Source of the DNA: Isurus oxyrinchus
Taxonomy: Eukaryota
Assembly (NCBI GenBank): GCA_026770705.1
Contig: JANJGN010000071.1
Span: 1,054,001-1,118,000, forward strand
Direction: 5' to 3'
Length of the DNA: 64,000 bases
Shown here: positions 1 to 62,603 of the stretch, piece after piece
Layout of the letters: the number at the start of each line of letters is the position of its first letter
Numbering within the stretch: position 1 is the first letter of the stretch
The notes under the pieces: model-generated
Told to the model about the DNA's origin: nothing
Seen by the model: the letters and a program-made list of their open reading frames with translations, nothing else
Database searches by the model: none
Translations under genes and position numbers: made by a program

Positions 1-2164
1 ATGGGAATACTTGGTCTATAACAATGAATGCAAAACATGCTGATCGAATTGACTTCAGGGATATACAGACAGGAGTTTAACAAATGGTTCTGCCAAGCAG
101 ATATAAGAGAAAGGAGGGGAAAAAGAAATATGGCAGTCTTCCACAAACACTGCTGGAAAAGAGCAGAAATGATTTCTCCCTCTCTCTCTCTCTGTCTGAA
201 GCTAACAGAATGTCTTCAACAATGTGCAAGTCTGAGCCAGATAAAATACAGGAATCTACAGAAAACCAACTAATTTAAAACAGCTTCAAACTTCACAGCC
301 TACGCTGTAGTACAAGCAAACGACTCTTTTAATTTTTTATTGGACTCTATAATTATNNNNNNNNNNNNNNNNNNNNNNNNNNNNNNNNNNNNNNNNNNNN
401 NNNNNNNNNNNNNNNNNNNNNNNNNNNNNNNNNNNNNNNNNNNNNNNNNNNNNNNNNNNNNNNNNNNNNNNNNNNNNNNNNNNNNNNNNNNNNNNNNNNN
501 NNNNNNNNNNNNNNNNNNNNNNNNNNNNNNNNNNNNNNNNNNNNNNNNNNNNNNNNNNNNNNNNNNNNNNNNNNNNNNNNNNNNNNNNNNNNNNNNNNNN
601 NNNNNNNNNNNNNNNNNNNNNNNNNNNNNNNNNNNNNNNNNNNNNNNNNNNNNNNNNNNNNNNNNNNNNNNNNNNNNNNATTATTTTTCCTCCAGTTAGA
701 TAACTAATAAACTTACTCTTTCTTTGACTCCACCAAACGTGGTTTAATTGGTTCATTCTTAACAATCAAAGAGACTTGCTTTGGAAATTGCATTTGGGGA
801 AAAATATATTTTAAACCCTTTTTTTCAACCAACCATAATTACCTCTTAAACATCTTAATCTCATTACTACTGAATTCAAAGCCCACATCTCAAAACATAC
901 AAGTTGGAAATTAGTTGTGACAGTTGTTTCAAGTTTCCCTCCAGGATTTGAACAGCTCAGCATTTACCATCTGTTATGTCATAACAGAGCTTCCTTCAAC
1001 TTAACCAACGAGCCAAAAATGTATTGAACTGTTTAAAGGAGACCTGTTTTTCAAAAGTACAAGATTAGGCATTGATCAAAAATGGCTGTCACGAGTCACC
1101 TGATTGCTGATACTGCAAACTTGATCACTTCTCTGGAAAGCTTCAAATGAATTGCACTACAGACATGTTGCATGAAAGTTCTCACTGAGGTGTGTCAGGG
1201 TCCACCTGAAACAGGGGCTCCATTAAAAATGCAAAGCGCTGGACTCTGATCACTGTAGGTCTATCAAGCTAATGGGAACTGCTCACCATGCAGATATTCA
1301 TCAGTCTTTCAAAACCTCTTGTGGAGGATGAAATACCTTCATCTCCTGTTGATTTATATCTTGAAATGCATCAAATGTTTCAGAGATGCAAAGATCAAAA
1401 AAGGGATTACTTGGTCTGCGACAATGAATGCAAGACATGCTGATCGAATTCCCTTTGGGAATATACAGACAGGAGTTTAACAACAGGTTCTGTCAAGCAG
1501 ATATAAGAGAAAGTAGGAGGAAAAAGAAAGATGGCAGTCACTCAAAAACACAGCTGGAAAAGAGCAGAAATTCTCTCTCTCTCTCTCTCTCTTTCTGAAG
1601 CTAACAGCGCATCTTCAACAAAGTGCAAATCTGAATCAAATCACCACCAGGATGCCACAGGAAACCAATTAACCTTGAACAGCTGCAAACGTCAACAATC
1701 TACACCTCAAAGACAAGCAATTGTATTAATCATATATTCTTTTAAATTTTTATTGGAATCTAANNNNNNNNNNNNNNNNNNNNNNNNNNNNNNNNNNNNN
1801 NNNNNNNNNNNNNNNNNNNNNNNNNNNNNNNNNNNNNNNNNNNNNNNNNNNNNNNNNNNNNNNNNNNNNNNNNNNNNNNNNNNNNNNNNNNNNNNNNNNN
1901 NNNNNNGTGAGTGTGTGTCTGTCTATGTACCCTTGTGAGTGAGTGTGTGTGTGTGTGTACATGTGTGCGTGTGGATTGTTGCATCTTTATTATTAACGTT
2001 ATTTAAAAATAGTGATCACACAAGCCTGGTTTCTAAGGAAATGAAACTGCAAACAATTTACAGTAAAGTGAAACGTACAGGAATAATCTATTTATTTTGA
2101 GCTGATGATATATAATTATACATGAGGCATGTTGCTAATTTCAAATGTCATCTGAAATATGGCA

Positions 2165-2455
2165 GGTCTGACAGAGCAGCATTCCCTCAGTGCCCACCCT
2201 CTGACAGTGCAGCACTCCCTCAGCATTGACCCTTTGAGGGTGCAGCACTCCTTCAGTATTGACCCTCTGGGAGTGCAGCACTCCCTCAGCACTGACCCTC
2301 TGGGAGTGCAGCTCTGCCTCAGTACCGACCCTCTGGAAGTGCAGCACTCCCTCAGTGCTAACCCTCCAACAGTGCAGCACTCTCTCAGTACTGACCCTCT
2401 GACAGTGCAGCACTCCCTCAATACTGACCCTCCAACAGTGCAGCACTCCCTCACT
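2165..2455 (-). repeat. 33-bp minisatellite derived from a DeuSINE/SacSINE1-like element
   Basis: Tandem unit cagtgcagcactccctcagtactgaccctctga; produces the spurious RECCTVRGSVL ORFs. Confidence 0.85.
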
Positions 2456-2519
2456 GGGAAGAGTCCGTCCGCATTTTACGCTGAAACCTTGAGACGGTCT
2501 CAAAATCCCAACCTTCCAT

Positions 2520-3174
2520 CTCAGAGAGAGAGAGTGCGTTTATGTGAGAGAGAGAGACAATGTATGTGTGAGAGACTGAGAGTGTGTATGTGTGAGAGAG
2601 CAAAAGAGAGGTAGAGTGTGTGTGCATGAGAGAGGGAGGTAGCTTGTGTGTGTGAGAGAGAGAGTGTGTGTGAGAGAAAGAGAACGTCTGTGAGAGTGAG
2701 AGAAAATTTATGTGTGAGAGAGAAAGATAGAGAGAATGTGCGTGTGAGATAACGTGTGTGCAAAAGAGAGTGTGTGTCTGTGAGAGAGTGTTTGTGTATG
2801 TGAGAGTGTGTGTGTGAGATCATGTGTGTGTGTGTGTTTGAGAAAGAGGGTGTGTGTGTTTGAGAGAGGGAGTGTGCGAGAAAGAGATGGTGTGAGTGTT
2901 TGAGGGAGGGGGAGATTGTGTGTTTGAGACAGGGAGTGAGAGAGAACATGTGTGTGAGAGAGAGAGTGTGTGTGTATGTGTGTGTGTGAAAGAGAAAGTG
3001 TTTGTGCAAAACAGTGTGTGTTTGAGAGTATGTGTGCATGTGTGAGTGTGTGTGTGTGTGTGCTAATGTTTGTGTCTGTGTGTGTGTGAGGGTTTGTGTG
3101 TGAGTGAGTTTGTGCGTTTGTGTGCGTGTGTGTGTGCATGTGTGTGCGTGAAAGAGTGTTTGTGCAAAAGAGTG
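2520..3174. repeat. (GA)n/(GT)n low-complexity tract
   Basis: Direct inspection. Confidence 0.95.
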
Positions 3175-3459
3175 NNNNNNNNNNNNNNNNNNNNNNNNNN
3201 NNNNNNNNNNNNNNNNNNNNNNNNNNNNNNNNNNNNNNNNNNNNNNNNNNNNNNNNNNNNNNNNNNNNNNNNNNNNNNNNNNNNNNNNNNNNNNNNNNNN
3301 NNNNNNNNNNNNNNNNNNNNNNNNNNNNNNNNNNNNNNNNNNNNNNNNNNNNNNNNNNNNNNNNNNNACAGTTACACACGTTGCTAGGGACCACTTTTCC
3401 GCCTCTCTGTCAGACTGTGTGTATCTGACAGCAGGTCAGGCAGAAATAGTCCAGAATGC

Positions 3460-7844: not shown

Positions 7845-7890
7845 ATGGGAGAGGTCGGTCTGATATTGATCTTCATCAGCTTGCTGCAAG
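7845..7890 (+). pseudogene. Gene B signal-peptide exon (coding part MGEVGLILIFISLLQG)
   Basis: Acceptor catttag at 7830, ATG at 7845, hydrophobic core, phase-1 donor CAAG|gtacaa; ends SLLQ like the gene A signal exon. Confidence 0.8.
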
Positions 7891-8640: not shown

Positions 8641-8710
8641 CTGCTGCCTCTCTCCATTGAAGTAATATTCTGCTTTTTGATGTCCTGTCTCTTCCCTTGT
8701 TGCCTTTCAG

Positions 8711-9012
8711 GAGTGACGTCAGAGGGATGGTCTATGAAGGCGCTACCTCGGAGGGCCATCAGCAGCTCTTGTGTGGTTATTCTGTGTAGCTTTGACTTTC
8801 CTTCCCACTCTTACACAGCACTGCACGGAGCTTGGTATAAATATTGGTATAGATGGAAATATACCATCACATACACCAAAGATCCCAATTATGGGGTGGC
8901 CACATTCGTGGGACGTGCTAAAATAATCGGCGACTTGGAAGGGAAGAATTGTTCGGTGAGGATTGACAGTCTCAGAGCTGAAGACAGTGACGTGTATTAC
9001 ACCCAATTCTAA
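8711..9012 (+). pseudogene. Gene B Siglec V-set exon (MAG/sialoadhesin-like), truncated after DVYY
   Basis: Acceptor ctttcag at 8710; SSCVVILCSFDFP...HGAWY...FVGRAKIIGDLEGKNCSVRIDSLRAEDSDVYY shows the Siglec double-Cys and E-strand Cys. Sequence switches to Gypsy gag at ~9000; stop at 9010-9012. Confidence 0.8.
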
Positions 9013-18110: not shown

Positions 18111-18359
18111 GGTAAACAGAACGTGCTGATTACTGAGCCCCGGAACACAACCAGAGACACAACTAGTGAGGGGGAGACCCCAGCTCCCCGGGGTCTCTCT
18201 GAAGGTGCATTGGGAGGCGATGCTGGACATTGGCACATCGACAATCCCAACGGCCTTCTCTACGCCAATCCCCAAGTATTGAGGATGTCCAGTGATGATG
18301 GGTCTGTCCACAGGGAAGAGGAGACGGAATACGCACAGATCAGGTTCGAGCATAACTGA
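18111..18359 (+). pseudogene. Orphan Siglec terminal cytoplasmic exon, copy 1 (LLYANP; TEYAQI)
   Basis: Acceptor ctctgtag; paralogue of 45563-45811; AATAAA at 18891; no TM exon upstream in the window. Confidence 0.8.
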
Positions 18360-18556
18360 ATGAGAAATGGGGAGTGGGAGTGAGGAGGTGTGAGGGTGGG
18401 GGTAGTGATTGAGATTCCTGGGAACAAGAAACAACCCACTGGGGGAGAGGGGGAGAGAGGGAGGAAGGGATGCGATTGGGCTGCGGTTGCTGTGGTTTGG
18501 AATGAAATGCTTCTCCAGAGAGGACTGGATGCTGAGCCACTGGGGATAGAGATTCA

Positions 18557-18595: not shown

Positions 18596-18934
18596 TCTTT
18601 GTCTTTCTTTCTGTGTCTGTCACTCATTCTCTATCTCCAGCTCCTCCTTTAAGATGCCCGTTAATAACTGACTTTGTTGACTCAGCTGTTGGTCTCCTGT
18701 CCCTTATATCTCCTCATGTGCCTCAGAGTCAGGTGAAGATGTGACTAACAATTCCCGGATGAGCCTTGGGACATTTTGCTACATTAAAGGTCCTATATAA
18801 ATGCAAGTAGTTGCAGTAAGTCTGATCTGCTTCGATTAACAATGGAACCACAAAGGCTCCTTCGACAGGGCGTGTGTGCAGGAGGATCCCAATAAATACA
18901 TTGAGCTGTGAGATTTTTAATTCTTACATCGAAT

Positions 18935-19514: not shown

Positions 19515-19596
19515 GAGAAAGACAGCGATGGAGGAGAGAGTTTCAGGGACCAGTGACATTGCATTGACCCCCAGTCCACTCTCTGTGAAGCACCAG
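19515..19596 (+). pseudogene. Orphan Siglec juxtamembrane cytoplasmic exon (RKTAMEERVSGTSDIALTPSPLSVKHQ)
   Basis: Paralogue of 44193-44274 with the same splice sites. Confidence 0.8.
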
Positions 19597-38503: not shown

Positions 38504-38539
<36 letters not shown>

Positions 38540-41568: not shown

Positions 41569-41850
41569 ATGCATCACGGAATCTCTCAATCAATTCTCTT
41601 GATATGATTAACGCTTCATCGATCAATATGATTGAGGGGAATTCTGCAGTGATAATCTGCTCTGTCAAGAGCTTCCCAGCTTCTAACCTGACGTGGCGAC
41701 ATCTTAATATCCCAATGAACAGAACAAATTCCAACAATGAGCTGTGGTTGGTGATTCCTCACGTTACATCCAGGGACACTGGAGACTATCAGTGTGTGGC
41801 AGAGAATGAACATGGAGCAGTGGAGGGGTCCATAACCATCACTGTGGAAC
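41569..41850 (+). CDS. Gene A C2 repeat exon 10
   Basis: 282 nt, phase 1-1. Confidence 0.9.
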
Positions 41851-42515
41851 GTGAGTTACTGCAAACTTCAACATCACTCACACACACACACATACACACA
41901 CAGACACACACACACACACACGCACACACACACACACGCACACACATACACATAAACAGGTGCACGTAAACATGCGTTCATATTTAATCCCATGTCTGCA
42001 CAGGTGTGCACGCCTGTATGCTCACACACAGAAGCATACATACAGAATCACACGTGTGCTTGCTCACACACACACACAGACATGTGTGCGTTGTCTGTTC
42101 TCCCTGTGCTGCACTGGAGTGTTGCTGCAGATTCTGCTCTGAAACACTGACGACATCAGCTGAACAAGACCCTGTATTGGACGAGCAGCCCCCTGCACAG
42201 AGAATTGTAGGTTTATCACTCAATACCCCATTATTCTAAAGCAATTCCTCCACTGTCAAATCCCTGTGAACATCCTGATGATGTGAAAGACATTTTCTTT
42301 TCTTCTAGCCTGACAGTGTCTCCTCTGGTGGAAGGCTGTAATTACAGCGTGACAGTTTACATATCCACACGCAGCAAGAGCTGAGCAACACTCAGCTTGG
42401 GCTGAGAAATGACAATTAATGTTCATGCCACACAAGTACCAGGGAGAGCTGTTCCTTGTATTGACCCTTGGGATTGTTTATCCCAACCTGATAGGGCAGA
42501 GGGAGCCCAGGTTGT

Positions 42516-42582
42516 GACTATCAGTGTGTGGCAGAGAATGAACATGGAGCAGTGGAGGGGTTCATAACCATCACTGTGGAAT
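42516..42582 (+). pseudogene. 3' fragment of an additional C2 repeat exon
   Basis: DYQCVAENEHGAVEGFITITVE plus donor gtgagt; 5' part missing. Confidence 0.8.
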
Positions 42583-42596
42583 GTGAGTGTGGAGAT

Positions 42597-42850: not shown

Positions 42851-43401
42851 TTCTCATTCTTTAATTGATAAATATTATATATAAATGTTACATGGATTAC
42901 TTTGAAATGCAATACCTGTATTCATAAATTGCTTAGAAATGACTAAACATTCAACAGCCAATGAAGCATTATCGAAGTGAGCTCACTGTTGTAAAGGAGG
43001 AAACACAGGTACTGATTTGTACACAGCAAGATCCCACAAACCACCGTGTCTTAATGACCTGATAGGCGATTATTTCAATGAGGTTGGTTGTTTAATGTGT
43101 AGAGAGACTACATACCCTTTAGGGAGGGAAGCATGTCTCGATGTGGATGTGACTCCAGTCTCAGACACCAACATGGTTAACTCACACCTGCCCTGTGAAC
43201 TGGTCTCCCAGTTTGGGACAAACCAGTGGATCAGGAGGAAGACCCCCCACCACCTTCTCAAGGGGAAACTAGGGATGGACAATAAATGTCAGCATTGCCC
43301 GAGAATGAGTATTTAAACACTGAGTGAGTGTATCGCTTCTCGAGATACATCGGAGCATCATTGTAAACCTGTAGTGCAGTAATTAATGGCTGTTTTTACA
43401 G

Positions 43402-43498
43402 GTAGAGACTCCAGTAAAGGGACAGTAGGATTGTTCACAGCTGGGATCATGTTGAGTGTTTTCCTGGCTGGAATCTTCATCTTCATCTGTGTGAGAAA
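43402..43498 (+). CDS. Gene A transmembrane exon (RDSSKGTVGLFTAGIMLSVFLAGIFIFICVRK)
   Basis: Acceptor ttttacag; uncharged hydrophobic segment of about 22 aa; phase 1-2; donor gtaagt. Confidence 0.88.
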
Positions 43499-44192
43499 GT
43501 AAGTCTGAAGATTTAACTTGATTTTAATATAAACATTTGCTTCAATGTTCTTTCCTGAAGTCGGTGATTGTTTCCCTTGTGTTAAGCGCCAGATGCCTCT
43601 CCCTAACTGGTCTCTTTATCCGTTATGATCCAGAGAGTGTTTTTCATTGCCCGTTATCCAGATGAATAATAATCAGTTGCTGTGATCTGGAAGGTGCTGC
43701 CTGAAAGGGCGCTGGAAGCAGATTCAATAGGAACTTTCAAAAGGGGAATTGGATAAATACTTGAAGGGGGAACATTTGAAGGGCTATGGGGGGAAGAGCA
43801 GGGGTGGAGGGGGGGGTCAAAATATGGCGTGTTATTATAATGATATTATACCTTAGGCTTATTTACTGTATAAGACAGAAAACACCAATCACTCATAGGG
43901 GATTTGGTGAGAATGTTAATGATTTGTTTATCAAGAGTCGGCTCGAGAACAGTTATACATACGAAGAAAGCTTGAAGGCATCAGAGCTGTGAGTGTGTGT
44001 TCTGCTCAAAGCAAATGTCAAACTGAGATTGGATCACATGACACACTTCCATTATAGTGATGTCACGCTGATACCCCTTATTGGAACTAGAGACAGTCCA
44101 GTCGTTGGTGTAAGGTTACAGTGGGCTCTGTGTCTGTGCTGCACTGACTCTCTGCTATATGATAACCACAGTGTGATATTGTGTTATTGCAG

Positions 44193-44274
44193 GAGAAAGA
44201 CAGCAATGGAGGAGAGAGGTTCAGGGACCAATTACATTGCATTGACCCTCAGGTCACTCTCTGTGAAGCACCAG
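44193..44274 (+). CDS. Gene A cytoplasmic exon 1 (RKTAMEERGSGTNYIALTLRSLSVKHQ)
   Basis: Phase 2-0, in frame with the TM and terminal exons. Confidence 0.85.
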
Positions 44275-45562: not shown

Positions 45563-45811
45563 GGTAAACAGAACGTGCTGATTACTGAGCCCCAGAACAC
45601 AACCAGAGACACAACTAGTGAGGGGGAGACCCCAGCTCCCCGGGATCTCTCTGAAGGTCCAGTGGGAGGCGATGTTGGACATGGGAACCCCGACAATACC
45701 GACGACCTTCTCTACGCCAACATCAACTTTTCAAAGCTGCCCAGCGGTGACAGGACTGTGCACAGGAGCGAGGACACGGAATACACACAGATCAGGTTCC
45801 AGAAAAACTGA
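45563..45811 (+). CDS. Gene A terminal cytoplasmic exon with ITIM (LLYANI) and ITSM (TEYTQI)
   Basis: Acceptor ctctgtag, phase 0; DDLLYANINF...EDTEYTQIRFQKN*, the tail layout of CD33-related Siglecs. Confidence 0.9.
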   Translation, partial: GKQNVLITEPQNTTRDTTSEGETPAPRDLSEGPVGGDVGHGNPDNTDDLLYANINFSKLPSGDRTVHRSEDTEYTQIRFQKN

Positions 45812-45999: not shown

Positions 46000-48070
46000 A
46001 CAAGGTGAGGTGAGAGTGACTGACCTTAACATTAAGGCTGCATTTGACCGAGTGTGGCCTCTGGGAGCCCGAGCATAACTGGAGTCATTGTGAATCAGGG
46101 GTGGTACGAAAGTATAATAATTTGCATAATATTTTCCTGGTTTGTTTTAAAGTAGGTTTATGGGTGTGAGTGTAGATGGGTCTGTCTGTGTAGTTTAATT
46201 ACATCTGGAGTCAGGTAGACTGCAAGTTTGAGATTATCAAAAGAAGCTAGATGTAGAAATGTACTTGAAATGCTAATGAGAACACATGGAGGCTGTGTTA
46301 GCATGTAAGGTGTGAAGGGGTTGTTTAGATTTCAAAGGGATGTTGGTCTGTTTAGGACAAGCCAATAAGCAAAGCTAAGGAGTTTTTTTTTAATTTTACC
46401 CAAACTTCATTGACAATATTGGCAACATGAAAGTTTATATTATGGGAAAGATACAGTTCCAAAGAATTTACACATCAAAGAGAGAGAAACATGTATAAAG
46501 GAGAATGAAAGGCTATGTTGGGGGCCATGTAAGATCTAACAGGAGTGTGTGAAACAGGCTTGAAGAAGCCTCCAGGCATTTGTGCATAAGTCTGTTATGT
46601 TCAGTAAATAAAGTTGGAGAAATCCATTTAGAATTCCACTGTCAAGTGTGTGCTGTGTTAACTCGCTGGGTTTGTTTTTAATCTAAAATTGTATTTTGGA
46701 CTGTTGCCTTAAACGGGCTCTGTAACTGGGAGTCAGGTTAATTAGGAATTTGAGAATTTATTTTAGTTGTAACTAACCGTGGTATTATGTCTGTGCTTGA
46801 AATCTTTTATTTTGTTAATAAATATCCTAATCAAATTTTTAAAATGTCTAAAGGTTGTGGTCAACTCATTACTCCAGAATTCAGTGCACGCATCTTGTAA
46901 TAAATACAAATTGCAAACTATTGTGATAGCATGACCAATTTTCCCTTGTGGATTTGGAGCACCAAGCACACATCATCTGCCATGTCATGTCACAGGGAAA
47001 ACTCTCCACTCGTTGGATTCATACCAAGTACAAAGGAAGGTGGTTGTGGTTGTTGGAGGTCAGTCATCTCAGTTCCAGGATATCACTGCAGGAGTTGCTC
47101 AGTGTAGTGTCCTAGGCCCAACCATCTTCAGCTGCTTCATCAATGACATTCATTCTATCAGATGGTCAGAATTATGGATGGTCACTGATGATTGCACAAC
47201 GTTCAACATCATTCATGACTCATCAGATGCTGAAGCAGTCCATGTCCAAATGCAGCAAGACCTGGACAATATCCAGGCTTGGCCTGACAAGTGGCAAGTA
47301 ACATTCATGCCACACAAGTGCCAGGCAATGACCATCTCCAACCAGAGAGAATATATCCATCTCCCCTTAATGTCCAATAGCATCACCATTGCTGAATCCC
47401 CCACTATCAACACTCTGGGGGTTATCATTGACTAGAAACTGAACTGGACTAGCCATATAAAAACTGTGACTATAAGAGCAGGCCAGAGCCTGGGAATCCT
47501 GTGGTGAGTAACTCGCCTACTGACTCCCCAAAGCCTGTCCACCAACCTCAAGGCACAGGTCAGGAGTGTGATGGAATACTCTCCACCTGTCTAGGTGAGT
47601 GCAGCTCTAACAACACTCAAGAAGCTCGACATCGTCCAGGACAAAGCAGCCCCGCTTGATTTGCACCCCATCCACAAACATTCTCTCCCTCCACAACTGA
47701 CGCACAGTGGCAGCAGTGTGTGTACCATCTACAAGATGCAACACAGGGAGTCACCAAGCCTCCTTAGACAGCACCTTCCAAACACATGATCACTACCATC
47801 TCGAAGGACAAGGGCAGCAGAAACATGGGAACACCACCACCTGGAAGTTCCCCTCCAAGTCACTCACCATCCTGACTTGGAAATATATCACCGTTCCTTC
47901 ACTGTCGCTGGGTCAGAATCCTGCAACTCCCTCCCAAACAGTTCTGTGGGTGTACATACACCACAGGGACTGCAGCAGCTCAAGAAGACAGCTCACCCCC
48001 ATATTCTCAAGGACAATTAGGGATGGGCAATAAATTCTGGCCTAGCCAGTGTCAGTGAATGAATACAAAA
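46000..48070 (+). mobile_element. CR1-like LINE 3' half, interrupted by an LTR
   Basis: IKAAFDRVW...GQSSQFQDITAGVAQCSVLGPTIFSCFIND...QQDLDNIQAW; 3' tail ggacaattagggatgggcaataaa. Confidence 0.85.
46102..46994 (+). mobile_element. Solo LTR nested in the LINE
   Basis: TG...CA termini, flanking gggg/ggga near-duplication, AATAAA at 46607 and 46817; reverse-complement similarity to 19732-20489. Confidence 0.7.
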
Positions 48071-50427: not shown

Positions 50428-52023
50428 ATGGGAATACTTGGTCTATAACAATGAATGTAAAACATGCTGATCGAATTGACTTCAGGGATATACAGACAGG
50501 AGTTTAACAAATGGTTCTGCCAAGCAGATATAAGAGAAAGGAGGAGGAAAAAGAAATATGGCAGTCTTCCACAAACACTGCTGGAAAAAAGCAGAAATGA
50601 TTTCTCCCTCCCACTCTTTCTGTTCCTCTCTCTCTCTCTCTCTCTGTCTGAAGCTAACAGAGAGTCTTCAACAACGTGCAAGTCTGAGCCAGATGAAATA
50701 CAGGAATCTGCCGAAAACCAACTAATTTAAAACAGCTTCAAACTTCACAGCCGACGCTGCAGTACAAGCAAATGACACTTAATTTTTTATTGGACTCTAT
50801 AATTATTTTACCTCTGATATCTGTGTGTATGTTTATGTGTGTGTCTGTGTGTGTGTGCCTGTGTGTCTGTTTGTGTGTGTGTGTGTGCTTGTCTGTGTGT
50901 GTGTGTGTTGTGTCTGTGTGAGCGTGTCTGTGTGTGTGCATTTGCCTGTGTGTGCGTGTGAGCCTGTCTGTGTGTGTGTCTGTGCACCTGTCTGTGTGAG
51001 TGTGTGTATGTGTGTGTAATTAAAAAATTAAAATGTGTCCCATTTTTATTATTTTTTCTCCAGTTAGGTAACTAATAAACTGACTCTTTCTTTGACTCAA
51101 CCAAACATGGTTTAATTGGTTCATTCTTAACAACCAAAGAGACTTGTTTTGGAAATTGCATTTGGGGGAAAATATATTTTAAACCCTTTCTTTCAACCAA
51201 CCATAATTACCTGTTAAACCTCTTAACCTCATTACTACTGAATTCAAAGCCCACATCTCAAAACATACAAGTTGGAAATTAGTTGTGACAGTTGTTTCAA
51301 GTTTCCCTCCAGGATTTGAACAGCTCAGCATTTACCATCTGTTATGTCATAACAGAGCTTCCTTCAACTTAACCAACGAGCCAAAAATGTATTGAACTGT
51401 TTAAAGGAGACCTGTTTTTCAAAAGTACAAGATTAGGCTCTGATCATAAATGGCTGTCACGAGTCACCTGATTGCTGATACTGCAAACTTGATCACTTCT
51501 CTGGAAAGCTTCAAATGAATTGCACTACAGACATGTTGCATGAAAGTTCTCACTGAGGTGTGTCAGGGTCCACTTGAAACAGGGGCTCCCTTAAAAATGC
51601 AAAGCGCTGGACTTTGATCACTGTAGGTCTATCAAGGTAATGGGAACTGCTCACCATGCAGATATTCATCAATCATTCAAAACCCCTTGTGGAGGATGAA
51701 ATGCCTCCATCTCCTGTAGATTTATATCTTGAAAAGCATCAAATGTTTCAGAGATGCAAAGATCAAAAAAGGGATTACTTGGTCTGCAACAATGAATGCA
51801 AGACATGCTGATCGAATTCCCTTTTATATGTGTGTATGTGTGTGTGTGTCTGCGTGTGCATTCTGACTGAGCCGAGTTCACAGTTTCACACGTTGCTAGG
51901 GACCACTTTTCCGCCTCTCTGTCAGACTGTGTGTATCTGACAGCAGGTCAGGCAGAAATAGTCCAGAATGTACTGTGGTTTTGTAGCATTGAAACAACGA
52001 CATGAACTAAATGAGTGCTGCAT
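50428..52023. repeat. Segmental duplicate of 1-3510 with an internal deletion
   Basis: Near-identical blocks; the (TG)-rich 50806-51045 occupies the position of the N gap at 357-679. Confidence 0.85.
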
Positions 52024-52025
52024 CA

Positions 52026-52090
52026 CTATCAGTGTGTGGCAGAGAATGAACGTGGAGCAGTGGAGGGATTTATAACCATCTCTGTAGAAC
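52026..52090 (+). pseudogene. Gene C: 3' fragment of a C2 exon fused to the duplicated upstream region
   Basis: YQCVAENERGAVEGFITISVE plus donor gtgagt. Confidence 0.8.
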
Positions 52091-52124
52091 GTGAGTTACA
52101 CAGAATTGAACATTCTCTTGTTGT

Positions 52125-53160
52125 TAGCTCATGGGATGTGGGCATTGTTGACAAGGCCAGAAATTATTGCCCATTTGTAACTGCCCCTTGAGGAGGTGGT
52201 GGTGAGTTGCCTTCTTTAACCACTGCAGTCCATGTGGTGTAGGCACACCCACAGTGCTGTTAGGGAGGGAGTTCCAGGATTTTGACCCAGCGACAGTGAA
52301 GGAACGGCCGATAAAGTTCCAAGTCCAGGGCAGACCACCACCTCATGTTCACCTCCAAATCACAAACCACACTGACTTGGAACTGTCCTGGTGGAAGAGG
52401 TTAAGGGTTTGGAAAGTGCTGTCGAAGGAGCCTAGGTGAGTTGCTGCAGTGCATCTTGTAGATGGTGCACACTGCTGCCATTGTGTGCCAGTGGTGGAGG
52501 GTATGAATGTTTATGCTGGTGGATGGGCTGTCGATCAAACAAGCTGCTCCTGGATGGTGTCGAGCTTCTTGAGTGTTGTTGGAGCCGCACTCATCCAGCC
52601 AAGTGGAGATTATTCCATCACACTCCTGACTTCTGCCTTGTCGATGGTGGACAGGCTTTGGGGAGTCAGGAGGTGAGTTACTCACCACAGAGTACCCAGC
52701 CTCTGACCCGCTCTTAGCCACATTATTTCCTGTTGCCAGGTGATTGCCAGGGCCAACAGCCTTTGCTGTATTCAGTATCATCAGCTGATTCCTGATGTCA
52801 CGTGGAGTCAATCGAATTGTCTGAAAGCTGACATCTGTGATGCTGGGACCCTCTGGAGGAGGCCGAGATGGAGCATCCACTCAGCACTTCTGGCTGAACA
52901 TGGTTGCCAATGCTTCAGCCTTGTCGTTTGCACTGATGTGCTGAGCTCCCCCATCATTAAGGATGGGGATATTTGTGGAACATCCTCCTCCTGTTAGATC
53001 TTTAATTGTCCATCACCATTCATGACTGGATGTGGCAGGACTGCAGAGCTTAGATCTGACCCGTTGGTTGAGGGATCGCTTTGCTCTGTCTATAGCATGT
53101 TGTTTCCGCTGTTTGGCGTGTATGTAGTCCTGTGTGTCACCTCAGCAGCTTGGCACCTCT
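52125..53160 (-). mobile_element. CR1-like LINE remnant
   Basis: AVCTIYKMHCSNSPRLLRQHFPNP; same family as 46995-48070. Confidence 0.8.
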
Positions 53161-53351
53161 GTTATATGTGAATCCTCCTTATAGAAACCTGCATGTACAT
53201 GGATATTATCAATAAATATTACATAGATAAATGTTATTTGTATAGACCTTTCATGCATAGACAATATCACTTCACAAGTTCAGAATTACTACATGTACAT
53301 AGGGAACCATTCTCAAACTGTACCGGAGTCATTCATTGGCTGATTTTACAG

Positions 53352-53448
53352 GGCGAGATTCCAATGAATGGAAAGCAGGATTGCTTGGAGCTGGAATCTG
53401 TTTGAGTGTTGGACTGAGTGGATTCTTCATCTTCAAGTGTGTGAGAAA
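53352..53448 (+). pseudogene. Gene C transmembrane exon (RDSNEWKAGLLGAGICLSVGLSGFFIFKCVRK)
   Basis: 97 nt, phase 1-2, paralogue of 43402-43498, canonical splice sites. Confidence 0.8.
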
Positions 53449-53724
53449 GTAAGTGTGAAGGTTTAATTGGTTGTTTTTGAAAATGTTTTCTTCAACCTTC
53501 GCTCCTTATAGAAAAAACTTGCATTTCTATAGCACCTTTTACAATCCAAAACCCTTCACAGCCCCTGAAGAGTTTTGATGTTCAATCACTATTGAACACC
53601 TCATCCTACACTCCCTGTTTGACAACTCAGTCCTGTAACTGGCAGTTTTGACCCGGACCATAAAATACCCTGTGACCCCTTGAGGATGTGAAAGGTGCTA
53701 TATAAATGAAAACCTTTCTTTCGT

Positions 53725-54172
53725 TAGTGCATGCAATCTCATTCCATTTTCCATGTTTCATTCACTCTCTCTTATCTCCACTAATGCTGGCCTTCTCATT
53801 CTCTCTCTCATTCACTCTCTCTCCAATCTCCACTAATGCCCTCCTTCTCATTCTCTCTCTCATTCACTCTCTCTCCAATCTCCACTAATGCTCTCCTTCT
53901 CATTATGTCTCTCATTCACTTTCTCTCCAATCTCCACTAATGCTCTCCTTCTCATTCTCTCTCTCATTCACTCTCTCTCTTATCTCCACTAATTCACTCC
54001 TTCACATTCTTTCCATCATTCACTCTCTCTCCAATCTCCACTAACGCTCTATTTCTCATTCTCTCTCTCATTCACTCTCTCTCCTATCTCCACTAATGCT
54101 CTCCTTCTCATTCTCTCTCTCATTCACTCTCTCTCCAATCTCCACTAATGCTCTCCTTCTCATTCTCTCTCT
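53725..54172. repeat. ~50-bp CT-rich minisatellite
   Basis: Unit ctccactaatgctctccttctcattctctctctcattcactctctctccaat. Confidence 0.9.
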
Positions 54173-54399
54173 CGTCCTCTTACACGTTGTTCAGTCTCTC
54201 ACATTTTTAAGGAGCGCTGAGCTACATCTGCTCCTTCAGAAGATCCACCTCAACACCTGGAGTGAGCAGAGAATTGCAACTCGCTCAACGACTGCTCAGC
54301 TTTACACAGGAATCACGTCACAGAGTCAGGACAAAAAGGGTTAACAGTTTTCTTTCAACACAACACTAAGGCCCTACGTTTCAATGAAAGGGTTTTCAC

Positions 54400-54715
54400 A
54401 ATTGTTCCCCAATTCCTGATTTTGTCTCACAGAGACACATCAACCCTTTCTCATTAAATACACAGAGGGAGCAGCACAGGAAGAGGTCATTCAGCCCAAG
54501 CAGAGCGTGTGGGCAGTTCCTCCCCAGGCGAGCAGTCGGACAGGTCCTGGGTAAGTAACGGAACGATTGGAACTCACTTCCATGACCAACACCGTCCTTT
54601 GTTGATGTTGTGACTTTATAAAGACAGATTCCAATGATTGATGCCTTTGAAATATTTCTACTGATTATTGAGATCTGGGTGTGAGGCTCAAGTCTGTTGT
54701 ACAGAACATCTTTCT
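54400..54715 (+). repeat. Duplicated copy of the gene A promoter/exon 1 and start of intron 1
   Basis: Matches 25440-25755; donor at 54550; ETS site altered (aattcctgat). Confidence 0.8.
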
Positions 54716-55061
54716 GGTTAAATTATGCAGACAGGTTACACACAGTCTACAATTATATTCACTCGGGCCTAGAAGATTAAGGAGTGATCTAATTGAGGGG
54801 TTCAAACTGATTAAACACTCGATAGGGTCGATAGAGAGAAGCTATTCCCTCGGGTGGGGGTGGGTGGTGGGGGTCGGGTGGAGTCCAGAACAAGGGGGCC
54901 GGAACTTCAGATTGGAGCCAGGCCGTTCAGGGGTGATGTCAGGAAGCACTTCTTCACACAAAGGGGAGTGGAAATCTGGAACTCTCTCCCCAATAATCAA
55001 ACCCAACACCGAATACACATCATGTTGATTGTCACTCTGTCCATTTCCATCTCTATTACAG

Positions 55062-55166
55062 AAGAGAGGCGAGGGGAAAGCAGGAATCAAATCGAACCAC
55101 CGTGTTGATGAATATCGAGGTCCTGTTTATGAAAACTGTGAGCGTGGTTGGGCTTTGAGGAATCAG
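55062..55166 (+). pseudogene. Gene C cytoplasmic exon (KRGEGKAGIKSNHRVDEYRGPVYENCERGWALRNQ)
   Basis: Acceptor ctattacag, donor CAG|gtgagt, 105 nt, phase 0-0. Confidence 0.7.
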
Positions 55167-55302
55167 GTGAGTCACACACCACAGGATCACCAGCCTCTCA
55201 GCTGCTCCAGTAGCCTGGTTATTGATATGGCTGCTCCAGTCCTGTATCTGCAATGTTTTATACAGTCACTCCCAAACCCAACCAAACTCACACCCAACAC
55301 CA

Positions 55303-55652
55303 TTCAGAATCAATAATCAAACCCCGTTCAGTATCAATAATCAAACCCCGTTCAGTATCAATAATCAAACCCCATTCAGTATCAATAATCAAACCCCGTT
55401 CAATATCAATAAGCAAACCCCGTTCAGTATCAATAATCAAACCCCGATCAGTATCAATAAACAAACCCCATTCTGTATCAATAATCAAACCCCGCTCAGA
55501 ATCAATAATCAAACCCCGTTCAGTATCAATAATCAAACCCCGTTCAGAATCAATAATCAAATCCCGTTCAGAATCAATAATCAAACCCCGTTCAGAATCA
55601 ATAATCAAACCCCGTTCAGTATCAATAATCAAACCCTGTTCAGTATCAATAA
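55303..55652. repeat. 24-bp minisatellite
   Basis: Unit atcaataatcaaaccccgttcagt, about 14 copies. Confidence 0.95.
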
Positions 55653-55751
55653 TTAATGTATCCATTGTGGGTGGAATTTTCGATTTGGATCAATAATTCT
55701 AAACACTGATCACTCTGATTGTCACTCTGATCATTTCTGTTTCTATTACAG

Positions 55752-55868
55752 AAGAAAGATGAGAAGGATCTGGAAATGAAATCTAACCGCGGAGTCAATC
55801 CTGATACAGATGATGATCTTTACGCAAACTGTGAATTTGCCAAGGATTCTGTTTATGGGAATTTATAA
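55752..55868 (+). pseudogene. Gene C terminal exon (KKDEKDLEMKSNRGVNPDTDDDLYANCEFAKDSVYGNL*)
   Basis: Acceptor ctattacag, phase 0, stop at 55866-55868; acceptor region homologous to that of the preceding exon. Confidence 0.7.
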
Positions 55869-56984
55869 ACTGAGCAAGAATGAGACACACACAGTGTAGG
55901 GAGAATACAGAACGGGAGAATCATTCAAAACTCTAACTTACCTTCCTAATATCCACAGGAACTCACTCCCAGGAAATAGATTTAAACCTCTTGTTACAAT
56001 CTGATGGAATTTCTTCGGAATGATCTATCCAGGATGATTGTCTGTGGGTTTCAATTCGAACATCCTCCTTCAGAATTGTCCCTCCCTGTTGGAAACATCC
56101 TTCTCTCCATTCTGATTGTAAATGTCTTTAGATATCGTTCGATGATGTACCAGGACAGAACGGACAAATTCAATCCCGTGTCCATGATTATGAGTTAATT
56201 TTCATTCTGTTATTCACCTTCCTGTCAGTCAGTGTTTACAGAATATTCATCAGCCAGTGTAGACTTCAGGAAATGCAGGATCGGTGGATAATTGGAGCAG
56301 AGGAGATAGGCAAAATTTACTCAGCATTTTGTAATCAAATGTATTTTTAGATATATATTTGGATTTTACACTTCATCGTTAAACAGCAAAACTAACAGCA
56401 ATCTGGGAAACAGGGAAACAATTTGTTTGGAGATTTGAGAAATTCTCTGCAGCTCAGAGGAGAACAGATGTGCTACAGTGCCACCACTGGTGGGAGGACA
56501 TCATTTCAGCGTGACATGTTTACATTGATGTTGCCAGTGAACATAGGAAATTATGATGTGAAAAATTGGTTGCAGGTTTACCTTCTTCAGAAGTTCATGG
56601 ATGGATGAGACAGCTTTGATAACAGAATGAGATATAGCTGCAATAAACCTCAATTTTAGTCTTTCACACTTGGAGAGTACAATTAGCATCCATTCTGAAG
56701 GCTGAGTGGATGGGTGGACTGTGCGATGTGTTTCAGATCACAGAGACCAACATCCTTGATCCTGGTTCTGCTCTATGTTTGATGACATTCTTGGATAAAA
56801 GATTGGGAAAATAAATAATCCTCCTGCATTGATCTGTAACTGGTCTCTCCATCTGTCAATGTCCTGAGGAGAGAATTGGGTTTGAGGTCCAAAATCAGAT
56901 GCATACTTTGACTGCCCATTGAATAGGAACAGGAGGAGGCCATTCAGCCCCCTCGAACCTGCTACACAGGAACAAGAGAGCACC

Positions 56985-57202: not shown

Positions 57203-58625
57203 TGAGAGGAGGACATTCAGCCCCTCGAGCCTGTTACACAGGAACAGGAGGAGGCCCATTCTGTCCCCTTGAGCCAGTTACACAGGAACAGGAGGAGGCC
57301 CATTCTATCCCTTTGAACCTGTTACACAGGAACAGGAGGAGGCCCATTCTGTCCCCTCGAGCCTGTTACACAGGAACAGGAGGAGGCCCATTCTGTCCCC
57401 TTGAGCCAGTTACACAGGAACAGGAGGAGGCCCATTCACCCTCCTCGAGCCGGTTACACAGGAACAGGAGGAGGCCCATTCTGTCCCCTTGAGCCTGTTA
57501 CACAGGTACAGGAGACCCATTCAGTCTCCACCACCTTGTTACACAGGAACATTAGGGGCTCCATTCAGCCACTCAAGCCTGTTCCACATGAACGGGAACA
57601 AAAACAAAAATAGCTGGAAAAACTCAGCAGGTCTGACAGGATCTGCGGAGAGGAAGACACTTGACGTTTTGGGTCTGTATGACTCTTCATCAGAACTAAG
57701 GGAATCGAGAAATGAGGTGACGTTTTAGCTGGTAGAGGGGGGTGGGACAGGTAGAGCTGGATTGTGGGCCAGTGATAGGTGGAGGCAAAGAAGAGGTTGC
57801 CAAAGATGTGATAGACAAAAGGACAAAGGGGTGTTGACGGTGGTGATATTATCTGAGGAATGTGCTAATGGGGACATTAAGGGTAGAAAGCAGGACGAGC
57901 AAGAGACAGATAGTCCTAGTGGGGGTGGGGTGGGGGAAAGGATTGAAATAGGCTAAAAGGTAGAGATACAACAACAGATGTAAAACATTTAAAAATAATG
58001 GAAATAGGTGGGAAAAGAAAAATATATAAATAAAATAAATATTAAAAATGATCAATGATTGGAAAAGGGAGATTGGAAAGGGGGTGGGGATGGAGGAGAG
58101 AGTTCATGATCTGAAATTGTTGAACTCAATATTCAGTCGGGAAGGCTGTAAAGTGCCAGGTCGGAAGATGAGGTGTTGTTCCTCCAGTTTGTGTTGGGCT
58201 TCACTGGAACAATGCAGCAGGCCAAGGACAGACATGTGGGCATGAGAGCAGGGTGGGGTGTTAAAATGGCAAGCGACAGGGAGGTCTGGGTCATGCTTGT
58301 GGACAGACCGAAGGTGTTCATCAGAGCGATCACCCAGTCTGTGTTTGGTCTGTCCCATGTAGAGGAGACCACATTGGGAGCAGTGAAGGCAGTAGATTAA
58401 ATTGAGGGAAGTGCAAGTGAAATGCTGCTTCCAATGATGCTCCTAATGTACTCGAGCCTGGTACACAGGAACTGGGGAAGGCCAATTCAGCCCCTTTAGC
58501 CTTTTACACAGGAACAGGAGGAGGCCCATTCAGCCCCTCGAGCCTATAACACAGGAACAGGAGGAGGCCCATTCAGCCCACTCAAGCCTGTTACACAGGA
58601 ACAGGAGGAGGCCCATTCAGCCCAA
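57203..58625. repeat. ~42-bp CR1-tail-derived minisatellite (57203-57595, 58450-58625) split by a Penelope element
   Basis: Same unit as 10370-10732. Confidence 0.85.
57596..58432 (-). mobile_element. Penelope-like retroelement 3' end (GIY-YIG endonuclease)
   Basis: GQTKHRLGDRSDEHLRSV...LPVACHFN...KLEEQHLIFRPGTLQPSRLNIEFNNFR. Confidence 0.85.
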
Positions 58626-58759
58626 GCAGAGCGTGTGGGCAGTTCCTGTCCAGGCGAGCAGTCGGACAGGTCCCGGGTAAGTAATGGATCGATTGGAAAT
58701 CACGGGGGAAGTTCTGAGGGCTCCTAATCCATTGTCCTGTCTTCTAAATCAGCACCTTA

Positions 58760-59264: not shown

Positions 59265-59406
59265 CAACTTCCTCATTTTGTCTCACAGAGACACATCAAC
59301 CCTTTCTCATTAAATACACAGAGGGAGCAGCACAGGAAGAGGTCATTCAGCTCAAGCAGAGCGTGTGGGCAGTTCCTCCCCAGGCGAGCAGTCGGACAGG
59401 TCCTGG
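59265..59406 (+). promoter_or_regulatory. Gene D putative promoter and non-coding exon 1
   Basis: Copy of 25445-25588 with an intact ETS site and gtaagt donor. Confidence 0.55.
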
Positions 59407-59815: not shown

Positions 59816-59894
59816 CTTGAGAGTGAGATGTGGATGGAATATCTGGGAGTGGACGATGATCGGGAAATCTACTTCCTCTTGTCACTTTCCCAAG
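59816..59894 (+). pseudogene. Gene D signal-peptide exon (1-nt deletion relative to gene A)
   Basis: ATG at 59856 to the donor is 39 nt, versus 40 nt in gene A. Confidence 0.75.
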
Positions 59895-60597
59895 GTAATA
59901 TCATCATCAGCTCAGACAGATTTATGTTTAACAGTCTTTGTAAAAGATCATTCTTATCTCTTAATCTCTGTAACCTCCTGCAACTCACCCAAACAACTTC
60001 CCAGATCTCTGTGTTACTCCAATTCCGGCCTCTTGACCATCCCCCGATTCCCATCACTCCAATACTGGCGGCCGGGCCTTCAGCTGCCTGGGGCCTGAGC
60101 TCTGGAATTCACTCCCTAAACCTCGGGGATGGAGGAGATCAGAGGGTTTCATTTTACTGAGAATCACCACGACCACATCACAGCTGCAGTCAGAATAGAC
60201 AGAGAGTCCAGCCCTCACACTTCCTGCACAGTTTCACCATAGCAACCACAATATGGAAATTTAAAAATACTGAAAGTTAAACTGAAGCTCAAACCAGTCA
60301 GTGTAGAGAGATGAGATGTTTACACAGTTTCCCTGTGTATCTTGTAGACACTGTGTTGGATGGAAGACTGGCTTCTCTAAACAGGGTCCTGAGGACCATG
60401 AGCCAATGTAGAATGAACTTGTCCACTCCTGTGTCCAGGATTCTCTTCCCTCCGTTGTGAAACCTTGGGGGGTTCTTTGTGTGTCCTGTAGATGGTCCAC
60501 ACTGCAGCCACAGTGCCCCAGTGATGGAGGGGGTGGATATCAAGTCTAGTGGATCTACAAACCATCCAGAGTTAAATATTGATATTTCTCTCCCCAG

Positions 60598-60973
60598 TTG
60601 GACTGTCACAAGAGTGGAAAGGCGACACTCCACGAGAGGTGACAGCGCAGGAAGGTTCGTGTGTACAGATTCCATGTCATTACAGTTAATCATCACATTT
60701 CGTAGGGAGATCACGTGTCGGAATCTGGTTGAAAGGAATAGATGGGAACCCACAGCCTAAATGGTCTATAGCCTTTCATTCCGAGGGTCACAGTCACAGG
60801 GATCAAAGATTCCGCCATCGTACCCGGCTGTCTGGAGACCTGAAAGATGGCGACTGTTCCCTGATTATAAACAAAATCAGACGGGAAGATGCAGGACCTT
60901 ATTTTTTTCAGAATATAATTTGACAACAGGAATAGATACAACTATTATCCTGTAACCCGGCTTCATGTTTCTG
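60598..60973 (+). pseudogene. Gene D Siglec V-set exon (premature TAA at 60687-60689; +1 T frameshift at ~60902-60908)
   Basis: Clear paralogue of 29520-29885 with two disabling lesions. Confidence 0.88.
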
Positions 60974-61832
60974 GTAAGTGCTGTGTTATAATTACTCAAC
61001 AATTCACATTCAACACTCAATGGGAAATAACACAAACTGTGACGTTTACAAATTAACACAAAACACAGCTTATTATAACACACTGTCTGATTCTCAATAA
61101 CCTGGTGATAGCTTCCAGTTCAGTCCGAAAGTAACCTCTAATACTCACTTTAATATCAATGATGAAAAGCATTAACTGTATTATCAGGTTATCCACTCCC
61201 ATCAATCTCTCCTGTCCTGTTTAAAAGTCTGACGTATCGATAAAAGAAAGATGTGCATTTCTGCAGCGCAATTTACCACCTCAGGAGGATCCAAATCCCT
61301 TCACAGCCAATGAAATTATTCCTGAATTGTCGTCACAGATGTTAAACACAGCAGGCAGTTTGTGCACAGCAAGATCCAACAAACCACAAGGTGATAAATC
61401 ACCCAGATCACTGAGGAAATGAGAAGCCAGTGAACTCAAACCTCTGGTCTGATGAAGAGTCATACGGACTCGAAACGTTAACCCTGTCTTCCTCTCCACT
61501 GATACTGTCAGACCTGCTGAGTCTTTCCAGCAATTTTTGTTTTGGTTTCAGATTTCCAGCATCCGCAGTATTCTGCTTTTAACTCCAATCTCTGGTCTGA
61601 GCCTCTTCTCTCATCCAGTGTTCTCAATTCACATGTCTCGGAGTGAACGTGTATTAAGCTGAGAGACAGAAACACTACTGCCAAAGAGCAAGAAAATCTT
61701 TCCTGATCATTGTAACCTCTCAGTTCTGAGATCATCCTTGTAAAAGTGCTTTCTCTTGTGGGACTGTGGTTTCTATTTGAACTGATGCTTCACGTTATAT
61801 TTGTCTAAAAGGATCCATTCTCTGTCTGTTAG

Positions 61833-62129
61833 ATTTCACAGATAAACCCACGATATTCCCTGCTGAAATTATTGCAGGAAAGCATGTGGATGTAAGCTGC
61901 ACCTTCAACACAACGTGCAATGGAACAGCAGCACCTGTCTTAACCTGGGAAACTCCCACTGACGTACCTGGATCAGTCTCAAACACTGTAACTCAGCATG
62001 GTGTCACTCTGACCTATACTTCTGTTCTGACCCTGATCCCATCACTCAAACACCACGGACACACTCTCAGCTGCAGAGTGAGATATCCATCTGTTTCATC
62101 GGAGCGGACCCTCGTACTAACTGTACAAG
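61833..62129 (+). pseudogene. Gene D domain-2 C2 exon (frame intact)
   Basis: Near-identical to 30744-31040; retains Trp (LTWET). Confidence 0.88.
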
Positions 62130-62455
62130 GTAAGAATGGACACCCTTCATTCTACATCAGCACTCCCTCAGCGCTGACCCTCTGACAGTGCAGCCCGTTC
62201 TCAGTATCCACATTCTCAGACCTCTCAAAGTGCTTCACAGTCGATAGAAGTTAATTGATATTTATTTGATTATTGCTGAATGAAGAGACAAGCTGTCTAA
62301 AGTTTTCATCTCACAGACAGTATTCTCCATGGCAACACCTCCACCTATCAGAGACCACTTGCCAACCAATCAGCACTCTCTTCCCATTAAGTATAAATTG
62401 TTGTTCACTTTCTGTTGGTTATCGTGCGAACGGGCTTCTTGATTCCTGCCCTGAG

Positions 62456-62603
62456 ATCTTAATGTCCCAAAATTCAGAACAAGTTCCAACAATGAGCTGT
62501 GGTTGGTGATTCCTCACGTTACATCCAGGGACATGGACACTATCAATGTGTTCAGAGAATGAACATGGAGCAGTGGAGGGGTTCATAACCATCACTGTGG
62601 AAC
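62456..62603 (+). pseudogene. Gene D degenerate 3' half of a C2 repeat exon
   Basis: NELWLVIPHVTSRD...ENEHGAVEGFITITVE with indels. Confidence 0.8.

Follow-up and report, generated by a model that had tools for sequence, protein, structure and literature searches.

A Probable Siglec Cluster Segment in the Shark Isurus oxyrinchus: One Complete Inhibitory-Type Gene Amid Broken Copies and Spare Tail Modules

Introduction

From mammals, Siglec clusters are known that evolve rapidly and whose signalling ends can be exchanged; there, genes of the CD33 type comprise a transmembrane (TM) exon and two cytoplasmic exons, an arrangement that recurs in the shark locus considered here. This locus is a window of 64,000 nt (the whole stretch of DNA analysed) from Isurus oxyrinchus, positions 1,054,001-1,118,000 on the forward strand of contig JANJGN010000071.1 in assembly GCA_026770705.1, and is probably a piece of a lamniform-type shark Siglec cluster in which one complete inhibitory-type gene, termed gene A, stands amid broken copies and spare tail modules. 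Among described systems, Siglec-5/14 and Siglec-11/16 are known paired Siglecs (articles on these pairs: PMC4042635, PMC5701461). For fish, a teleost-focused article reports four conserved Siglecs and the absence of CD33-related ones, with sharks unmentioned (PMC7226832). A literature search, with most subscription journals outside its coverage, retrieved no published study on the Siglecs of sharks, elasmobranchs, or cartilaginous fish; in the whale-shark genome paper, Siglecs receive a single mention, as an item in a list (PMC8455134). Automatic annotation by NCBI has already given the family names in many species.

Gene A shares with mammalian CD33-related Siglecs (Siglec-5, CD33, Siglec-7/8) the V-set arginine and cysteines followed by C2 domains, and both carry a proximal immunoreceptor tyrosine-based inhibitory motif (ITIM; LxYAxIxF) and a distal TEYxxI sequence. 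In contrast to these Siglecs, gene A possesses a run of ten C2 exons that are almost alike, and its tail has TNYIAL as an additional motif. As in the Siglec-5/14 and Siglec-11/16 pairs, neighbouring units in the window have near-identical ligand-binding exons and differing 3′ ends. Unlike in these pairs, the V exon of gene A's partner is dead in the window, and none of the three tail types is a charged-TM, adaptor-dependent module as found in Siglec-14 and Siglec-16. The presence of an inhibitory tail with ITIM and TEYxxI in a shark suggests that this design predates the split between cartilaginous and bony vertebrates. It is accompanied by two further tail types—an ITIM variant with a proline, conserved across three or more lamniform genomes, and a double-YxN end whose conservation extends from sharks to skates—and the relics in the window document how heads and tails recombine and how receptor families are rebuilt via duplication and loss. 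Tandem duplication, unequal exchange, insertion, and decay would together have shaped the cluster.

Gene A

Judged by its exons, gene A (26.0-45.8 kb) is the sole structurally complete gene among about five units in the window, all assigned Siglec-type exons of which lie on the plus strand. An exon-by-exon splice reading found AG/GT sites at every exon of the gene, compatible phases, and an open frame throughout. The leader exon (26022-26061; MIRKSYFLLSLLQ, donor gtaata) is followed by a V-set exon (29520-29885; phase 1-1) that carries the FFRIE arginine and the CxxxxC...C cysteines and is 90% identical to the Carcharodon model P0280 (comparison proteins are cited by P numbers), and by a first C2-set exon (30744-31040; 297 nt, phase 1-1) with 92% identity to P0156. 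A tandem C2 array with splice sites and open frames, assigned to Ig_3/I-set by Pfam, extends over 31260-41850. It comprises a copy of 93 nt with an internal deletion (31260-31352) and ten intact exons of 282 nt each, all of phase 1-1, starting at 32019, 32981, 34006, 35030, 36123, 37152, 38176, 39271, 40530, and 41569; the start at 32981 is taken from its acceptor (...tttag), the computed solution being 32987 with 276 nt. Within the array, a higher-order repeat of three exons and approximately 3.1 kb spans 32328-39652, and 32330-36451 is 97.5% identical to 35466-39601. A 5′-truncated C2 exon remnant consisting of the last 24 codons (42511-42582) precedes the TM exon, TM-A (43402-43498), whose hydrophobic core is free of charged residues. 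The tail is encoded by cytoplasmic exon 1 (44193-44274), which carries TNYIAL, and by the last exon (45563-45811), in which the ITIM LLYANI and the immunoreceptor tyrosine-based switch motif (ITSM) TEYTQI are followed by the stop codon. A homology between 19.4 and 44.1 kb had been considered as the TM exon and was rejected, its frames showing no hydrophobic run and its splice sites indicating cytoplasmic exon 1. Models of similarly great length occur in Carcharodon (P0280, with 1393 aa and nine C2 repeats) and in Stegostoma (P0010, with 1463 aa).

The homology basis comprises tblastn of exon-sized pieces, Pfam, and a solved-structure search, with exons compared singly. In the solved-structure search, the V exon of gene A matches Siglec-5 (E 1.4e-15), then MAG, sialoadhesin, CD33, and Siglec-8, and its top 18 matches are all Siglecs (E 1.4e-15 to 9.8e-9); these five score similarly, all at 1e-15 to 1e-14, without separation of subgroups. 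Pfam assigns the exon to V-set (1.1e-13) and Ig_CD22 (1.2e-11). FFRIE aligns to FFRVE of Siglec-5, which places an arginine at the conserved F-strand position (FFRxE) that sialic acid binding in Siglecs requires, and the cysteines typical of Siglecs, CxxxxC in strand B and one more in strand E, are represented by SCVQIPC and DCSL in gene A compared with LCVLVPC and NCSL in Siglec-5. The tail layout that marks the CD33-related subgroup, a proximal ITIM with a distal ITIM-like motif or ITSM, is likewise found in 45563-45811. The V exon at 8.7 kb (V′) matches sialoadhesin (E 3.4e-9) as well as MAG and Siglec-5; it has Q at the arginine column, situated at the exon break, where its relative P0154 reads YYFYVD. 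In the V copy at 60.6 kb, the arginine is lost by a frameshift. Chance similarity is excluded because tblastn of exon-sized pieces against the window yields E-values of 1e-30 to 1e-65.

Translated, gene A would give rise to a long type-I membrane receptor of approximately 12 immunoglobulin domains, with a V-set that retains the sialic-acid arginine. Its tail, with an ITIM near the membrane and a distal ITSM, has the layout of mammalian CD33-type inhibitory Siglecs. Once phosphorylated, the tyrosines might recruit SHP-type phosphatases and thereby damp the cell.

Two smaller observations concern this gene. TNYIAL in cytoplasmic exon 1 is an extra tyrosine motif common to gene A and Carcharodon P0175; the 19.5 kb copy of the exon and most relatives read SDIAL. 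The first intron contains an inverted repeat (26967-27118 and 28123-27975), the counterpart of which is mistranslated as the N-terminus of the great-white model P0280.

The YxN Cassette

The interval from 52.0 to 55.9 kb contains a further TM and tail module. A second 5′-truncated C2 exon remnant (52025-52090), used by no RNA contig seen, lies before the TM exon, TM-C (53352-53448), which has a core without charged residues and is 100% identical to P0155. Three cytoplasmic exons follow: cyt1 (54466-54550; 85 nt), which lacks tyrosines, sets the frame, and is often skipped; cyt2 (55062-55166), which carries DEYRGP and VYENC; and a last exon (55752-55868) with LYANC...VYGNL and a stop, 92% identical to P0156. 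All four exons have open frames and canonical splice sites, and by tblastn and exon comparison the interval from 45.8 to 52.0 kb contains neither a leader nor a V exon nor a first C2 exon. The cassette is a complete set of TM and three cytoplasmic exons lacking its own 5′ exons, and which 5′ exons feed it in the window is a matter of inference. The C2 exon ends at 42517-42588 and 52025-52096 are 91.7% identical over 72 nt; the TM exon regions 43346-43556 and 53296-53506 share 74% of their nucleotides, and their peptides are 62.5% identical. This bears out a sequence-only reading of the window, which had proposed that gene A and the YxN unit share a C2 exon end and homologous TM exons; the three kinds of tail that this reading had listed are likewise present, all on the plus strand, with LLYANP at 18111-18359 and 21045-21293, LLYANI at 45563-45811, and YxN at 54466-55868.

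Logan contigs of four runs, of which X1, X2, and X3 derive from one sample and X5 from a second organism, were aligned to 51900-56900. The runs contain RNA, since their contigs show spliced joints, each with GT..AG borders. TM-C is joined to cyt1 (53448>54466) in X5 and directly to cyt2, with cyt1 skipped (53448>55062), in X1, X2, and X3, i.e., in all three runs of that sample; cyt1 is joined to cyt2 (54550>55062) and cyt2 to cyt3 (55166>55752) in X2, X3, and X5. Acceptor and donor of TM-C are both used. The cassette type is expressed, and expression of this very copy is likely. When cyt1 is skipped, 55062-55166 is read in the +1 frame, which contains no tyrosine and reaches a stop at 55156-55158; skipping would hence shift the frame and produce a tyrosine-free tail. 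The 22 letters joined 5′ of TM-C are the exact ends of five gene A C2 exons, occur again at 62582, and are one letter off the end of gene A's last full C2 exon (41829). The truncated exon at 52.0 kb was rejected as the partner of TM-C, as 3 of the 22 letters differ.

The tyrosines of the cassette conform to a pYxN-type pattern, with asparagine at +2 in YEN, YAN, and YGN. The consensus of an ITAM (immunoreceptor tyrosine-based activation motif; YxxL/I, 6-8 residues, YxxL/I) is matched in spacing alone by YANC, 7 residues, YGNL, and in the 28 homologous tails compared, the first tyrosine is followed at +3 by C, W, F, Y, or T, never by L/I. An ITAM reading was rejected on the grounds of the cysteine at +3 of the first tyrosine in the window; the label YxN/ITAM-like, as proposed earlier, thus stands in its first half, the YxN being conserved, and falls in its second. 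The terminal arrangement Yx[NS], 6-9 residues, YxN[LIVM] closes 29 of 266 fetched proteins, whose sources include sharks (both galean and squalomorph) as well as skates and stingrays. CD22 offers a comparison, its Y4 pYXNV site being reported to bind Grb2 and to contribute to inhibition (PMC5302901); therefore, a YxN tail need not be activating. The cassette likewise ends in YxN[LIVM] and has two further Y-x-N sites (VYENC, LYANC), and a turtle CD22-like model, P0018, ends similarly (...YENM...VYSNV). In contrast to CD22, the shark YxN tail has no ITIM and its tyrosines lie at the very C-terminus. Docking of Grb2-family proteins to the YxN sites is predicted.

Copies of cyt1 from this cassette are found outside it. 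One (25505-25588) lies approximately 0.5 kb upstream of the leader of gene A, with a peptide identical to that of 54467-54550, and another (59323-59406) approximately 0.5 kb upstream of the leader of unit 4, with a partial copy at 58614-58673; both are exact peptide copies with intact splice sites, and 25441-25753 is 96.5% identical to 54402-54715. Models of the great white and the basking shark (P0155, P0217, P0196, P0280) run through such cyt1 copies into the next leader, and transcripts reading through into a neighbouring gene may therefore exist.

Unit 1 and Its Double Tail

Unit 1 (7.8-21.3 kb) would be the remains of a second gene, of an arginine-less V type, of which a leader, a cut V exon, and a double tail are left. 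Its leader exon (7845-7890; MGEVGLILIFISLLQ, donor gtacaa) belongs to the arginine-less, 'MAG-like' V type, and its peptide agrees in 16/16 residues with the N-terminus of P0154 (isoform X4 of a Carcharodon MAG-like model). The 5′ part of the V-set exon V′ (8710-8998), 89% identical to residues 9-112 of P0154, breaks off after ...DSDVYY, and homology ends at 9000. Beyond 8998 lies unrelated sequence with a 234-aa open reading frame (ORF) in a different frame, presumably a retroelement gag. A tblastn search of the whole window recovered neither the remainder of this V exon nor the C2 exons that come next in P0154/P0156, and a lenient tblastn with exon peptides and P0154/P0156 pieces revealed no TM, cyt1, or C2 exon for this unit between 9 and 18 kb. 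With its C2 exons, its TM exon, and its first cytoplasmic exon gone, unit 1 would make no receptor as assembled.

The double tail consists of exon B1 (18111-18359; 78% identical to residues 1221-1306 of P0156), a copy of cytoplasmic exon 1 (19515-19596) with canonical splice sites that reads SDIAL and contains no tyrosine, and the terminal exon B2 (21045-21293; 88-89% identity with the P0180 and P0151 tails). Both tail exons carry LLYANP..TEYAQI. In B1, an internal AG|GT directly precedes the stop codon; B2 has none. In Carcharodon P0217 and P0156 and Cetorhinus P0261, such a first tail, the cyt1 copy, and the second tail are spliced in series; the double tail is therefore a conserved arrangement and does not represent two separate gene ends. 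The tail exons at 18.1, 21.0, and 45.6 kb share 67-72% protein identity in tblastn comparisons. In contrast to LLYANI of gene A, which conforms to the ITIM consensus [ILVS]xYxx[ILV], LLYANP of the 18.1 and 21.0 kb tails deviates from it by a proline at +3, found in 6/6 B-type tail exons compared. With the ITIM thus altered, the tail of unit 1 retains its YxN and its ITSM.

Unit 4

The segment from 59.8 to 62.6 kb is a copy of the head of gene A (94.6% identity between 29299-31072 and 60377-62161) with its leader and V exon disabled. In the leader region (59828-59894), the loss of 1 nt takes the MIGKS start out of the reading frame. The V exon (60598-60973) exceeds that of gene A by 10 nt, is interrupted by an in-frame TAA (60687-60689), and has one additional T at the FFR codons. 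The first C2 exon (61833-62129) is intact and 97.6% identical to its gene A counterpart at the nucleotide level; a 5′-truncated and frameshifted C2 repeat fragment (62458-62603) follows, and the unit continues past the window. Identity to gene A varies by region: 85.8% in the V exon, 98.4% in the adjoining intron, and 97.6% in the C2 exon, with V-exon differences concentrated at 29611-29734. Such patchy identity suggests sequence exchange. Either conversion of a patch by another paralog or rapid change in the loops that face the ligand could account for the V-exon divergence.

Relatives in Other Elasmobranchs

An unfiltered HMMER search with the V exon of gene A returned 1518 proteins at E<=0.001, 36 of them at E<=1e-30. 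The closest are NCBI models of sharks and rays named CD33-like, Siglec-8/10/12/13, MAG-like, and hemicentin-like, with Carcharodon carcharias and Cetorhinus maximus as the nearest species; exon-level identity to the models of these two sharks amounts to 84-100%, and the module order is equal. The order in the 18-56 kb region—B1, cyt1, B2, cyt1-C copy, V, C2, C2 repeats, TM-C, cyt1-3—corresponds to residues 1221-2090 of the great-white model P0156. In contrast to the window, P0156 proceeds from the C2 repeats straight to TM-C with no inhibitory cassette in between. More generally, the window differs from the NCBI elasmobranch models by its extra inhibitory cassette and its decayed units.

In the Carcharodon and Cetorhinus models, each of the two V types occurs with each of the three tails. 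The V type of gene A is combined with the ITIM tail in P0004, with the LLYANP tail in P0151 and P0280, and with the YxN tail in P0167, P0176, P0014, and P0153; the arginine-less V type is combined with the same tails in P0179, in P0180, and in P0154 and P0160, respectively. A search with the tail of P0014 found four proteins only. Tail exons cluster by type and not by species or head: identity is 84-100% within the ITIM type, 73-89% within the proline type, and 66-77% between types, in three species and with both V types. The tail types, compared in this way, are old lineages. In a window-sized search, the final exon of the YxN cassette could be aligned to the ITIM-bearing part of the gene A tail (NPD..DD.LYAN) at E 0.003, and the three tails are therefore diverged versions of one ancestral tail. 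A single gene with isoforms differing in their tails was not found; five Mobula isoforms differ at the N-terminus only. Cetorhinus P0004 and P0179 lie on one contig and have different V types and 100% identical tail exons; they may share one physical cassette.

Several proposals of the sequence-only reading are upheld by these comparisons. It had placed a Siglec cluster in a cartilaginous fish, as borne out by V-sets that match Siglecs and by closest models in Carcharodon and Cetorhinus. It had invoked birth-and-death evolution, as exemplified by the truncated unit 1 and the disabled unit 4, and a shuffling of ectodomain and tail modules, which agrees with the combination of both V types with all three tails in two lamniform sharks. 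Genes joining a Siglec V-set to the alternative tails, the absence of which would have spoken against it, exist as predictions (P0151 and P0280 with LLYANP; P0014, P0154, and P0167 with YxN). Its count of at least four co-oriented Siglec units holds with regard to orientation, all features lying on the plus strand, but not as four working genes, gene A alone being complete.

Alternative Explanations

Several points weigh against the interpretation of the window as a cluster segment with one complete gene. The comparisons relied on automatic gene models, some of which (P0156, P0217, and P0196) are plainly read-through chimeras. The RNA contigs were examined over 51900-56900 alone, outside the exons of gene A, which is known from its sequence; ligand binding and signalling of its receptor, like the ligands and signalling partners of the cluster receptors in general, are presumed. 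The window is a gapped draft assembly with satellite DNA at 10-17.5 kb, and the absent exons of unit 1 could have been lost in assembly. Moreover, identity between the RNA contigs and the window is 95-99%, X1 and X2 differ from it at every listed site in the 3′ untranslated region (55898-55937), and some or all of the contigs may stem from an allele or a paralog.

A working paired system, as first envisaged, would consist of at least four functional Siglec genes with near-identical heads and with inhibitory, ITIM-less, or activating (ITAM-like) tails. Three tail kinds and similar heads do exist in the window, and related sharks have models for every head/tail combination; moreover, the near-identical ectodomain exons (94.6%) expected of paired receptors are present. 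However, only one unit is complete, the frames are not intact in both partners since the 60 kb head copy carries a stop and frameshifts, the YxN tail departs from the ITAM consensus, and a partner with a charged TM segment and a short tail is missing from the window, the cores of TM-A and TM-C both being uncharged. A working paired system is thus improbable, and the claim of a paired activating member is not supported: no tail is of the Siglec-14/16 type, and the near-identical partner of gene A is disabled. The appearance of broken units would also arise if gaps and collapsed tandem repeats had caused exons of intact genes to be lost or misplaced. Four N gaps (357-679, 1764-1906, 3175-3367, 21493-21672), long satellites at 4.7-7.6, 10.3-11.7, and 14.3-15.5 kb, and a highly repetitive C2 array lend themselves to this explanation. 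Against it stands a piece order equal to that of the independent great-white model, and the lesions of unit 4 are point changes in well-assembled unique sequence. All assigned exons lie clear of the gaps. For gap 357-679, the flanks (1-356, 680-1456) align to 50428-50806 and 51048-51824, and those of gap 21493-21672 (21200-21490, 21675-21913) to 18266-18556 and 18665-18903, in equal order and orientation; continuity across these two gaps is supported because their flanks are colinear with paralogous stretches. Gaps 1764-1906 and 3175-3367 lie within simple-repeat DNA. An assembly artefact as the source of the pattern is considered quite unlikely.

Two further explanations concern the role of the YxN cassette beside gene A. 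The cassette might be the silent remnant of a lost gene, all contigs then deriving from near-identical paralogs elsewhere in the genome. This fits with contigs that are 1-5% off the window, with a depth in X1 and X2 that consists wholly of the other letter at 55898-55937, and with the truncation of the cassette's own upstream exon. On the other hand, all four exons have retained open frames and canonical splice sites, their peptides are 92-100% identical to Carcharodon models, and part of the X1 depth carries the window's letter at 55100 and 55842; a silent remnant is conceivable, if somewhat doubtful. Alternatively, the head and C2 array of gene A could have two splice partners to choose from, the inhibitory cassette nearby (43.4-45.8 kb) or, with that one skipped, the YxN cassette farther downstream (53.35-55.87 kb), cyt1 skipping giving a third, tyrosine-free form, so that a paired receptor would be made from one locus instead of two genes. 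Such a choice is suggested by the interval from 45.8 to 52.0 kb, devoid of leader, V, and first C2 exons, and by the use of the TM-C acceptor in RNA together with 22 joined letters that match five gene A C2 exon ends and not the truncated neighbour. In addition, Cetorhinus P0167 and P0176 and the last segment of Carcharodon P0156 link gene A's V type and C2 repeats to TM-C. However, the 22-mer is also present at 62582 and is one letter off the last full C2 exon, and the contigs are unable to connect distant exons. Whether gene A chooses between two cassettes constitutes the chief interest of the locus, and the answer leans towards the negative, slightly more so than for the silent remnant. The reading of the window as a cluster segment with one complete gene among relics and spare modules is retained as the probable one.

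Repeats and Transposon Remnants

The satellite arrays at 11.1-11.7 and 14.3-15.2 kb consist of one unit type in opposite orientations and are located where the absent exons of unit 1 would be expected. A minisatellite with a period of 33 bp, deduced from self-match steps of 33 bp, occurs at 17.5-18.0, 20.4-20.9, and 44.4-45.4 kb, as well as at 2.1-2.5 and 58.7-59.1 kb. It lies immediately 5′ of every ITIM-type tail exon and may promote unequal exchange among tail modules. When ten transposon-looking ORFs were compared with Pfam, one gave a match (RVT_1 at 47013-47432, E 8e-6); this fragment sits in the 6-kb interval between the end of gene A and the YxN cassette.

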